A DNA stretch of 64,000 nucleotides from Selaginella moellendorffii (lineage: Eukaryota; Plantae; Lycopodiophyta): positions 4,081,229-4,145,228 of the forward strand of contig NW_003314264.1 in NCBI RefSeq assembly GCF_000143415.4, read 5' to 3'. Positions 8,738 to 13,033 of the stretch are shown here, piece by piece; position 1 is the stretch's first letter; the number at the start of each line of letters is the position of its first letter. The notes below the pieces were generated by a model. It worked only from the letters and a program-made list of their open reading frames with translations. It searched no databases and was not told the origin of the DNA. The position numbers were made by a program, and so were the translations under genes.

Positions 8738-10435
8738 TCAAGAACAGACCTGGTGAGCACTCAAAGGCCCAACAAACGGAAGAGACTCAATAACGGCATC
8801 AGCTAAGTCAGCAATAAACGTTGGTTCGCATCCGAGTGCAGGTACACGCCGCCAATTCGTAATACCGGATTCTTCAGCTAGCTCCCTATACTCCATGTCG
8901 ATCTCCTCAAGCGTTTCTATGTGCTCGCTGACAAAACTAGAGGACCAGAAAGCCGTGTAATAGAATGAAAAGCTGAAAGCATTTACCTGATTGGCACAAC
9001 TAAAAGACTTTTTATGCCTCTTTCTCCCAGATCTCTGATGGTCTGATCTGTGTATGGTCTTAGCCATTCTACAGGTCCAACTCGGCTCTGGGAACAAATC
9101 AACACCATTTGAGGCAGGAAGTAGCGAAGAAGTAGCTCCTAACCTGATATGCAAGCGTGTGCTCGCAAATGACACCTTCCTGTCGTAAATCTTTCATAAT
9201 GAAGTCAACGCATTCCTCCATTTCGTCCTTGTAGGGATCTCCCGCTTTCTCCACGTAAGAGACTGGCACACCGTGTGCACTAAAGAAGATATGTGCCTGC
9301 ATCTAACGGTGTTATTCTCTTCGTTACCTCGGCCTCGTTACCTCTTCAGGCTTCTCGAACTTCAAAAGTTCATTCTTGATTAGGTTTGACATGGACTTCA
9401 CGTATCCCTTACGATGATACCACGAAGGGATCACAGTGTGCTTCATGTTTAAAAGGTATTCGTCTCGCCTGTAATACAGTGGAAACAGTCTCATATAAAC
9501 GAAAAGTATTGCCTACAAAGCACATACCTGAAAATGCTTTCTAGCAAGCGAAGGCTAGAACCACTGGTGGAGATTGAGAATTGTGGATATAAAGGTAAAA
9601 TTACAAGTCTGTTGATCCCATCGGCTTTGACCTGATATTCCTCCAGCGAAATCAGTTTCTAGATTACTGAATATGTAGAGATAAAAGATGTACCTTATCT
9701 ATAGCTTCTTCTGTGAAAGGATACCAGTACCGCATTCCAACGTAGATTTTAGCTGGCAATCCCTTCCGTTCCAATTCTTTTGCAAGAGCAGCAGCCTGTG
9801 TGACAAAAATGGGGGCGTTAAAAAGACACCAAACAAAACGAAGGACAAAAAAGTTAAACCTGCTCGTCCGTGATTTTTCTCAAGGGCGAGCCTCCACCAA
9901 TAGCAGCATAACCTTCACTGCTTTTAGGCGCCCTCAGTGTTGAGATAAGTCGAGCAAGAGGCTTTTGCAGGAAACGGAAAAGTCGAGGCAGTCGAATAAT
10001 GTCCTGATTAGGAAATCGTCTTTAAACGTATCACGTCGAATGGAAACACTTACCGGATCAGCAAAGAGGTTGTAAAGAAACGGCTGAACATCCTCGAGCT
10101 TATCTGGACCACCAAGATTTAGCAGCAACACGCCTAGCTTGTCTCCTGGTTCGTTGTAAACACTTGCTTGCTCCGAAGTAAGCACTCCGGGACTACTGGT
10201 ACTCGAGCAACAAACTTCTATCGATCGCCGAGAAAGGGCGAACGCCTGCTTTGCCCCGCTTGACAGCCCACACCTCCGCTGAAAATGATAGTTCGATCCA
10301 AGTCGAATGTGCTTTGGCGACGTATCAAAGAGTGGCTCGCAGCTCAGGTTATGTGATGGCGAGGGAATAGACCTGAAAGTCTTGAGTCTTGAGAAGAAAA
10401 AGATAGAAATGACTAGCTTACCTGTGAGCCAGCAT
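8738..10435 (-). CDS. FC: Ferrochelatase (protoheme ferro-lyase), multi-exon, with a predicted transit peptide and a short C-terminus
   Basis: [48 protein letters not shown] and [13 protein letters not shown] motifs. ATG10435 (MLAH, 14-nt coding exon) splices in frame to a Ser/Arg-rich leader. Confidence 0.9.
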
Positions 10436-10870
10436 CGTGACGAGCTCGAAATTTCAAATCGAATGACGATCCCTGAAGCTCTGGCGAAAATCTAGACGCT
10501 ACCTGCGAAAGAAGAGCGATTGTCAGCTCGATCGGGCCGCTAGAACACTGAAGAACACAGAAATAAGCACGAATTCGCTTCTACCTGGAGAGTGCTCGAT
10601 CGGATCGGGAATACAGCGATCTTGAAGGCGATCGATCGATATTTCGCGAAGCCAGCCCTGAAATGCGGCTCTTTGAGCGGCACCGCCTTCGACCAAACTC
10701 TTCCCCACTAGTCAACACGCGGACTCTTCTCTAAACCCTACTCTAATGGTACCTTTTCTTGCAAGGCAAGTAGAATGCTAAGTACTTTAGGGCTCGTGAG
10801 GAGGAAGAGACGAGCAATGGCATTCTTCCTGTAGCTAGGGCAGAGGGCAAGGTTGATCGATCGAGCGAGG

Positions 10871-11041
10871 ATGCTGGGGATTTTCAGGACCTCCTTTTCA
10901 TTCACGGCGGGCACACTGGTGGGGATTTACATTGCCCAGAACTACGATGTCCCAAACATCGAGAAGCTGTTTAGAAGCACAATGGATCGAGCCAAGGAGT
11001 ATGAGGAAGCGTACCGACGGCGCGGCAGTGGCAAGGAGTGA
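10871..11041 (+). CDS. STMP1: Short transmembrane mitochondrial protein 1-like (DUF4535), 56 aa
   Basis: MLGIFRTSFSFTAGTLVGIYIAQNYDVPNIEKL carries the family motif G(I/V)Y.AQNY.VPN. Confidence 0.85.
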   Translation: MLGIFRTSFSFTAGTLVGIYIAQNYDVPNIEKLFRSTMDRAKEYEEAYRRRGSGKE

Positions 11042-11124
11042 TTGATCGATCCTAAAGAGTGGTAGAGATGGTTTCTACAAATTTAAAGAATTCTCATGAA
11101 GTTTTGGATGGAGTTTTCTCCTTC

Positions 11125-11436
11125 CTAGTTCTTTCTTTTGGGGTTGCTCTTGGGCTTATTCCGTGAATTCGATGCAGGGCTGTTGTAGTCATTGACAAAC
11201 GCAGCTAGTAACTTTCGAGCTCCTGGTGGTTTGATGAAATCGAATGATAGCTCTCCAGTAGCTCCATCGACAATCCCAGAAGCATAAACTTGATCGTCAC
11301 TCGTGACGCCTGGAAAGAAGCAGCAGGAAGAATGTAAGTATCAAGTATCTCTTTCTCGATCGATTCACTTACCTTGAGTGATCACAAATGCGATCGCCTG
11401 AAAGAGGATGATCACTGCGATTGCCCTCGCATTCAT
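11125..11436 (-). CDS. PSY: PSY-type (tyrosine-sulfated) secreted peptide precursor, 82 aa, 2 exons (11436-11373, 11309-11125); not in the ORF track
   Basis: Exon 1 encodes the signal peptide MNARAIAVIILFQAIAFVITQG. A 63-nt GTAAGT...TTTCCAG intron follows, and exon 2 ends RKLLAAFVNDYNSPASNSRNKPKSNPKRKN*, resembling the PSY pattern R.L....DY..P..N..H.P. Confidence 0.75.
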
Positions 11437-12259
11437 CTTGGTTCTCACTCATCCCACGGCCCTCTCCTCGAATTTAAAGAACTTCCTTGTCTCGCAAAGT
11501 CAACCTCGCAAATTCATGCCATGATCAATCCTAGAATCGAGCACTCGGTGGATTCTCGCAATAGCTGGTAACCGTGTGTCATTGACTTCCCAAGATATTC
11601 ACACTCGTGGGTCAAAGCCCGGGGATGAAAACCTCGTCCGTAACAGTTAAAAAACGATTTTCTACCACTGATCCAATGGTGGCGATGACGAATGGCCTAT
11701 GTCACGACCTCCGCCCAAAAATACTGGAAGATAAGATGAAGACAAAGGCGTTGTTTCTTCCCCGGATTATAAGCACACGTGTCAGTAGCAGCTGGGTGCC
11801 ACGCACGCACGCATGTGACACGAGGGCTGCCGTACGTGCGATTCGTGGCTTTTAGGGTTTAAGGGCGTCGCCAATTCGCCAGCGGTGGAAGAGCGCCAGG
11901 ACAGTGGAGTAGTGGGATTTGGATCGATCGCTGGATCCATTTTGGATCGATTGGGCGCCAGGAGGGCAAAATCTCGCTCACAGGTTTGTGTTTCGATTCA
12001 TCCAGCCGCGAGGAGGTGGAAAGAATTGGCAAGAGCGAGAGGAAGAAGAAGCAAAACAAAAAAAAAAAAAAAATTATCAGGCGCATCGACGGTTTTGATC
12101 GCCCTTGCATTTAGCTAGAGGCGGTTTCTTCCTCTCTCGCGGTGGTTTCCAAGAATCAAGATAGGTTTGGGGGAAGTTCTAGCTAGCGCTAGCGAGGATT
12201 TTGGGGAGCTGGAGCTGTGATCGATCGATAATCTACCGACAGGCGCTCTGGATCGCCAG

Positions 12260-13033
12260 ATGATGGCTAGGGTTGGGAGAGCCGATGCGCTCGCCGCCCA
12301 GCGCGAGGGGATCTCCAGCCTGAGCAGCGTGATCAGGGATCACCGGATGGCAATGGGAAGCACCAGCCGGCGGGACAGGCTCCTGGGCGTGAATTCCTCG
12401 CTGGATTTCAATGGGAGCTCGAGCGAAGCTAGCGAATTCAAGGAAGAGGATGTCTGGGGGATTGTTCCAGCGGCGGTGGAGCGCAGCAAATCCTCGCTGA
12501 GCTTGGAGGACGTGGTGTCGGATCACCATTCCACCTCCAGCTTGGTGGGATCGTCGGGCAAGCGCGGCCTTGCGCTGGATTACTCCTCTGGAGCTCTCGG
12601 CCTCTCCTCGATCGCTCGCAGCAGCTCCACTGCTTCTTCCGGCGGTGGAGGCGGGCGAGTGACATCGGCGTCGAGGATGATCCCGCAGAGGGTGGCGGGC
12701 TCCGGTGTTGGTGGCGGCGGCGGCGGAAAGGCGGCGATCCAGCACCAATCCGCGCCAGTGAACGTCCTGGACTGGTCGAGGATCCTCGGCAGCAAGAACA
12801 AGGATCGCTCCTCCGGCAATTTTGGAGAGGATGGAACCGCTGGTGGCGTGGTCGACGATCTAGAGGATGATGAAGACGAGAATTTCTCGGTGGAGAAGCT
12901 CCCTCCTCACGAGCTCGTCGCGAGGAGCCAGACCACCACCTTCTCGGTATTCGAGGGCGCCGGGAGGACGCTCAAAGGCCGGGATTTGAGCCGCGTGAGG
13001 AATGCCGTGCTCAAGCAAACGGGCTTCCTCTAG
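12260..13033 (+). CDS. S40: Senescence regulator S40 family (DUF584), single exon
   Basis: EFKEEDVW, QSAPVNVLDW, PPHELVAR and C-terminal SVFEGAGRTLKGRDLSRVRNAVLKQTGFL. Confidence 0.92.
   Translation: MMARVGRADALAAQREGISSLSSVIRDHRMAMGSTSRRDRLLGVNSSLDFNGSSSEASEFKEEDVWGIVPAAVERSKSSLSLEDVVSDHHSTSSLVGSSGKRGLALDYSSGALGLSSIARSSSTASSGGGGGRVTSASRMIPQRVAGSGVGGGGGGKAAIQHQSAPVNVLDWSRILGSKNKDRSSGNFGEDGTAGGVVDDLEDDEDENFSVEKLPPHELVARSQTTTFSVFEGAGRTLKGRDLSRVRNAVLKQTGFL

Follow-up and report, generated by a model that had tools for sequence, protein, structure and literature searches.

Does the interval between a DUF4535 gene and a senescence-regulator gene in Selaginella moellendorffii encode a secreted, sulfated peptide of the PSY type? 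The window, which is the whole 64,000-nucleotide stretch of DNA analyzed here, lies on scaffold GL377568.1 (assembly GCA_000143415.2), and its source is a seed-free vascular plant, as the original prediction had supposed. PSY-PSYR signaling balances growth against stress responses and dates to the common ancestor of land plants. Putative PSY orthologues have been reported for P. patens, M. polymorpha and P. abies (PMC8462819). In the literature that we examined, which describes PSYs of angiosperms, a gymnosperm, a moss and a liverwort, no explicit PSY ligand of Selaginella or of any lycophyte was found. TPST genes do occur in S. moellendorffii (PMC8462819), and the leucine-rich repeat receptor kinase clade of At1g17230, At2g33170 and At5g63930 is represented in S. 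moellendorffii by one orthologue (PMC8462819, Table 3). These three Arabidopsis genes are AtPSYR1-3 (PMC13618415). A lycophyte ligand candidate would fill this gap in a plant that has both a sulfating enzyme and a PSYR-clade receptor. From reading the DNA, our confidence is about evenly divided over whether the interval holds a real, unannotated nuclear gene for an 82-aa secreted prepropeptide of the DY class that most resembles PSY.

The candidate gene occupies positions 11436-11125 of the minus strand and consists of two exons with a total of 249 nt, corresponding to 82 codons and a stop. Exon 1 (11373-11436, 64 nt) starts with an ATG at 11436, contains 21 complete codons and the first nucleotide of the Gly22 codon and has the signal-peptide-like translation MNARAIAVIILFQAIAFVITQ(G). 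A 63-nt intron (11310-11372) follows in phase 1, interrupting the Gly22 codon, with the donor CAAG/GTAAGT and a pyrimidine-rich acceptor that reads ...CTTCTTTCCAG/G, also quoted as CTTCCTGCTGCTTCTTTCCAG/G. Exon 2 (11125-11309, 185 nt) translates as (G)VTSDDQVYASGIVDGATGELSFDFIKPPGARKLLAAFVNDYNSPASNSRNKPKSNPKRKN, with its terminal part quoted as ...GARKLLAAFVNDYNSPASNSRNKPKSNPKRKN, and comprises an acidic pro-region (VTSDDQVYASGIVDGATGELSFDFIKPPGA), an RKLL motif, a core beginning with Asp-Tyr (DY) and a basic tail, ending with TAG at 11127-11125. Its C-terminal part reads ...ARKLLAAFVN-DYNSPASNSRNKP-KSNPKRKN followed by the stop. If the intron were retained, exon 1 would run on as ...ITQGK and then terminate. 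Because the intron holds stops in both exon frames, no six-frame open reading frame spans the gene. The original prediction of a two-exon minus-strand gene hidden from the list of open reading frames thus agrees with the DNA base for base. Its canonical 63-nt phase-1 intron lies at 11372-11310 as AG/GTAAGT...CAG/G, and the predicted exon end, RKLLAAFVN followed by the core and KSNPKRKN, is read where it was placed.

Upstream of the ATG, a TATA-like TTTAAAT at 11472-11478 of the minus strand was read from the sequence 36-42 nt 5' of the start codon; one could speculate that this element at 11478-11472 is the core promoter of the candidate gene. An out-of-frame ATG at 11452, 16 nt 5' of the candidate start codon, would impair translation of the candidate unless transcription begins downstream of 11452. 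Speculatively, a transcription start about 30 nt past TTTAAAT would fall near or just beyond this ATG. On the opposite strand, the antisense of the signal-peptide exon forms a hydrophobic ATG-initiated open reading frame (MITAIALAFILVL..., 11408-11524, plus strand). This frame is a mirror effect of hydrophobic codons and gives no independent gene signal.

The deduced product has the features of a secreted precursor. The signal-peptide-like segment MNARAIAVIILFQAIAFVITQG combines a basic n-region with a 12-residue hydropathy maximum of 2.99, which ranks in the top 8 of the 2060 ATG-initiated open reading frames in the window. The sequence T-Q-G fits the -3/-1 rule, and by reading it we predict cleavage after Gly22; hydropathy and T-Q-G together support the signal-peptide exon of the original prediction. 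The predicted 13-residue core DYNSPASNSRNKP, a PSY-like domain, spans 11152-11190 of the minus strand, with its DY codons starting at 11190. Including the tail KSNPKRKN (to 11128), the segment from DY through the C-terminus comprises 21 residues. Known PSY motifs, DYxxxx[AP]NxxHxP, lie near the C-terminus of secreted precursors of 60-200 aa (PMC7913133, PMC11641228); in the candidate, which is 82 aa long, 21 residues lie between the start of the core and the stop. RKLL (11203-11214, minus strand), located five residues upstream of DY, is an RxLx/RxxL motif of the kind cut by subtilase SBT6.1 (S1P) and reported for AtPSY1-5 (PMC7913133). RKLL, which corresponds to the RxL(L) motif expected ahead of DY, is a predicted SBT6.1-type processing site, at which cleavage would occur.

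The local order of genes is two alpha-glucosidase genes, ferrochelatase (8738-10435, minus strand; GenBank model of 420 aa), a single-exon DUF4535 gene of 56 codons (10871-11041, plus strand), the candidate (11125-11436, minus strand), a senescence-regulator (S40) gene (12260-13033, plus strand) and an NADP-malic enzyme gene. GenBank calls no gene between 10436 and 12259, as one would expect if the candidate is unannotated. The DUF4535 gene (Pfam PF15054, 76.5 bits, E 1.2e-21) is missing from the GenBank annotation of the scaffold as well; its two haplotypes differ at one coding substitution (10889). Since the same annotation gap holds this clearly real unannotated gene, the status of the candidate as a gene is supported. 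Two small genes within 600 bp would have been missed at this locus, which suggests that the S. moellendorffii annotation overlooks genes of this size.

One alternative is that there is no gene here, that the intergenic or 3'-UTR space between the DUF4535 and senescence-regulator genes happens to contain an open frame, and that attention to PSY motifs has turned this frame into a plausible gene model. We consider this unlikely. The candidate and DUF4535 are convergent, and 84 bp separate their stop codons, so that the stretch could be the 3' UTR of DUF4535 read antisense; the 3' end of any transcript of the candidate must overlap or abut that UTR. The upstream out-of-frame ATG at 11452 would also fit a chance frame. 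Against a chance frame stand a hydrophobic start in the top 0.4% that leads directly into a perfect AG/GTAAGT donor, a strong acceptor that follows at 63 nt in the correct phase for a 61-codon frame, and a motif placed near the C-terminus behind an RxLL site.

Several other features of the surroundings were examined. The candidate was rejected as a part of ferrochelatase, because the GenBank model of that gene ends at 10435 and the opposite-strand DUF4535 gene intervenes. The ATG of the ferrochelatase model at 10435 (minus strand) opens an unspliced frame of just 5 codons (MLAHR), while a long open frame at 10491-9937 encodes a transit-peptide-like N-terminal region and has no ATG. An ATG at 10823 (minus strand), MPLLVSSSSRALK..., resembles a transit-peptide start, and the true 5' end of ferrochelatase may differ from the model. 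A perfect 11-bp direct repeat, AATTTAAAGAA, at 11080-11090 and 11471-11481 (spacing 391 bp) brackets the candidate, and a perfect 10-bp repeat, TTGATCGATC, at 10853-10862 and 11042-11051 brackets the DUF4535 open reading frame. With 0.1-0.5 such repeats per kb expected by chance, the bracketing is probably coincidence. A transposon-borne unit was rejected, as the flanking 11-bp direct repeat comes without terminal inverted repeats and a single such repeat per kb is close to what chance would give. Rfam and Tandem Repeats Finder scans of 10700-12300 gave no alternative explanation for the candidate. Further along, an 83-codon open reading frame at 11859-12110 (minus strand) has a very hydrophobic Phe-rich start and lies in a stretch full of A/T homopolymers, with an A21 run at 12053-12073, just upstream of the senescence-regulator gene. 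This open reading frame is most likely a low-complexity artefact of the shared promoter region and not a gene.

How often would such a combination arise by chance? Translating the window in six frames yields a single match to DY..P..N.[KR]..P, compared with 0.005 per shuffled window. Extrapolated to the 212-Mb assembly, roughly 3-17 chance matches are expected; the motif alone is therefore not significant genome-wide, and the several matches expected per genome are a point in favor of a chance frame. The other elements are more selective. Of the 2060 ATGs on both strands of the window, 43 begin an open reading frame that has 16 codons or more and a comparably hydrophobic start, and the candidate is the sole one of these 43 with a GTAAGT after it. 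The sequence AGGTAAGT has three occurrences in the 128 kb of both strands. At 63 nt, the candidate intron has a locally typical length, as introns in the neighboring ferrochelatase gene measure about 50, 64 and 62 nt. In each exon the proposed frame has the highest codon-usage score, which is +0.16 for exon 1 (-0.62 and -0.34 in the shifted frames) and +0.06 for exon 2 (-0.23 to -0.46 in the five alternatives). When all open segments with 60 or more codons are ranked by this score, exon 2 falls within the top 19%. As a rough estimate, the complete model, in which the motif lies in an open frame that soon reaches a stop and an in-phase consensus intron links this frame to a signal-like exon, would arise by chance at most 0.1 times per genome, a figure obtained as the inferred product of rough separate frequencies and not by simulation. 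A chance origin of motif, signal, intron and codon usage together is thus unlikely.

A second haplotype of the locus, on GL377652.1 (L002), is 97.4% identical over a 1.9-kb interval. Its start codon, both of its splice sites and its open frame are preserved, and its intron and core are identical. None of the six indels in the interval falls within the exons or the intron of the candidate, and an intact frame in both haplotypes alongside six indels elsewhere argues against a chance frame. One of the indels is a 9-bp insertion in the second haplotype directly 3' of the candidate stop (L002 3859-3867, opposite window position 11125). The coding sequences differ at four positions, three of them nonsynonymous and one synonymous. 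The amino-acid changes are Phe12Cys, within the signal peptide, a Phe-to-Leu exchange in the pro-region and a Lys-to-Arg exchange two residues ahead of the stop; the intron has no differences. None of the four substitutions lies inside RKLLAAFVNDYNSPASNSRNKPKSNPKR. A 3:1 ratio of nonsynonymous to synonymous changes is the neutral expectation, and with four changes the core would be spared by chance in about 1 case out of 5. Haplotype differences that look neutral would also be found in a chance frame. With four differences only, and these split in a neutral-like manner, the candidate is intact in both haplotypes while constraint is not demonstrated.

Searches for relatives were run exon by exon. 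A Pfam scan of both exon products gave zero matches. A word-index protein search with exon 2 came back blank; since the adjacent, real DUF4535 protein gave an equally blank result, we attach no weight to either outcome. An exact look-up likewise retrieved no record for the DUF4535 product. A full HMMER search of 1.84 billion cluster representatives returned neither the candidate itself nor a credible relative, in keeping with the expectation that the protein is unannotated. Three HMMER matches with E of about 1e-4 were rejected as spurious; these repeat proteins (bacterial Ig-like repeats and one repeated eukaryotic protein) align on low-complexity stretches rich in N, S, T and A. The best score among ESM Atlas look-alikes was 0.79 and uninformative, and a scan of JGI metagenomes found no relatives of the candidate. 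A lack of relatives and of annotation would be consistent with a chance frame. Known PSYs have themselves been found only through motif scans or at very loose E-values (PMC11641228).

If the candidate is a real gene, the next question is whether its product is a PSY. Of 32 aligned PSYs, 31 have all of D, Y, N, H and P; the exception is without the last Pro, and His is found in 32 of 32 (PMC7913133). The peptide of AtPSY1 is DYGDPSANPKHDPGVPPS with the domain DYGDPSANPKHDP, and that of PpPSY1 is DYEKPCANKKHDPSVCKNG with the domain DYEKPCANKKHDP (PMC12637578). Aligned to these, the candidate reads DYNSPASNSRNKPKSNPKRKN and has D1, Y2, P5, N8, K/R10 and P13 in common with both at the same spacing. 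The Asp-Tyr start, the minimal requirement of TPST, is present in ...FVN-DY-NSP, and the PSY Asn at position 8 (DYNSPAS-N) and Pro at position 13 (...SRNK-P) are kept. Position 7 is Ser instead of Ala or Pro, position 11 is Asn instead of His, and position 12 is Lys instead of Asp. In total, the candidate matches four of the five invariant PSY residues, and of the nine positions that Arabidopsis and moss PSY1 have in common it keeps six. Its identity to the AtPSY1 domain, 5 of 13, is about the level of 38.1% reported for AtPSY8 (PMC7913133), a PSY whose mature peptide has been identified by LC-MS alongside PSY5 and PSY6. The replacement of the conserved His by Asn, which the original prediction had pointed out, is found in both haplotypes. 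The prediction had also called the product a divergent PSY ligand. The resemblance stands, with D, Y, N and P kept; family membership is not supported, since positions 7 and 11 depart from the motif. With two defining positions different, one of them the invariant His, we describe the candidate as PSY-like and do not file it as a member of the PSY family.

Another possibility is that the gene is real and encodes a secreted, probably sulfated DY peptide that is neither a homolog of PSY nor a ligand of PSYR, being specific to this lineage and similar to PSY by convergence or fortuitously. Such a peptide would act on another receptor or have another role. We regard this as rather improbable. The evidence from gene structure would be the same as for the PSY-like reading, and the PSY-defining His and [AP] positions are replaced. 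The candidate differs from AtPSY1 and PpPSY1 in its strongly basic tail, KPKSNPKRKN, and no sequence search ties it to PSY. The 21 residues from DY to a terminal Asn resemble the arrangement in CIF1/2, whose precursors of about 80 aa close with some 21 residues that start with DY and end with Asn. Arguing in the other direction are the six of nine positions kept at identical spacing, the much worse fit of the RGF and CIF patterns, and the existence of a PSYR-clade receptor that needs a ligand.

Under the preferred PSY-like reading, a pathway can be proposed from the Arabidopsis and moss PSY/RGF literature, from which all of its steps are inferred. A 22-residue signal peptide would be removed in the ER after Gly22, and TPST would sulfate the Tyr of Asp-Tyr in the Golgi. 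An SBT6.1-type subtilase would then cut at RKLL, and N-terminal trimming to Asp would release a peptide of about 13-21 residues starting DY(SO3)NSPASNSRNKP, whose prolines may be hydroxylated. This mature peptide would act on the plant's single PSYR-clade LRR receptor kinase. In Arabidopsis and moss, PSY binding switches off the growth-repressing stress output of PSYR. More broadly, Selaginella might have a lineage-specific set of histidine-less PSY-like sulfopeptides, including the product of the candidate gene, that are the native ligands of the single PSYR-clade receptor or of another one, an idea that we put forward very tentatively and hold to be doubtful.

If this were true, the "invariant" PSY His would be dispensable for lycophyte signaling, and ligand-receptor recognition would have been rewired after the euphyllophyte split. 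Independently of this idea, a natural His-to-Asn variant would offer a direct way to learn which residues the receptor reads. The candidate would represent a correction to the annotation and a variant of the PSY type rather than a new class of peptides.

Comparison with known sulfopeptide systems places the candidate closest to PSY. With the PSY family (AtPSY1-9, the OsPSYs and PpPSY1; ligands of PSYR1-3) it has in common the Asp-Tyr start near the C-terminus, and its P17 aligns with one hydroxyproline position of AtPSY1; beyond the core, it has no detectable similarity to the family. The RGF and CIF motifs fit the candidate much worse than the PSY motif does. RGF/GLV/CLEL peptides are like the candidate in having a DY start, often P5, a 13-residue C-terminal domain and SBT6.1-type sites. 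RGF domains have Pro at positions 9/10 and end with His-Asn, His-His or Ser-Asn at positions 12-13 (PMC8708909), whereas the candidate has Ser-Arg at 9-10 and Lys-Pro at 12-13. The CIF search pattern is DYxxxxPxPPLxxPxPF (PMC8462819), of which just D and Y match, and the Pro/hydrophobic pattern of CIFs is missing. The RaxX and MigPSY mimics carry a DY...N..H.P-type core as their signature and, unlike the candidate, retain the His. A single intron located near the core in MigPSY genes is a further point of likeness. The mimics are effectors of microbial and nematode pathogens, whereas the candidate would be a plant gene. The moss peptides PSYL1 and PSYL2 have displaced His and Pro and are growth-active when sulfated (bioRxiv 10.1101/2024.05.13.593875), and PSYLs have been reported as bryophyte-specific (Lyapina et al., bioRxiv 10.1101/2024.05.13.593875). 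Activity of these displaced-His/Pro peptides indicates that a departure from the canonical motif does not exclude activity. Like the candidate, they are DY peptides of non-seed plants that lie off the canonical motif and were missed or mis-annotated. The two differ in what was given up, as PSYL1 and PSYL2 keep His and Pro at shifted positions (DYDNH.P types), whereas the Selaginella candidate keeps the spacing and loses the His.
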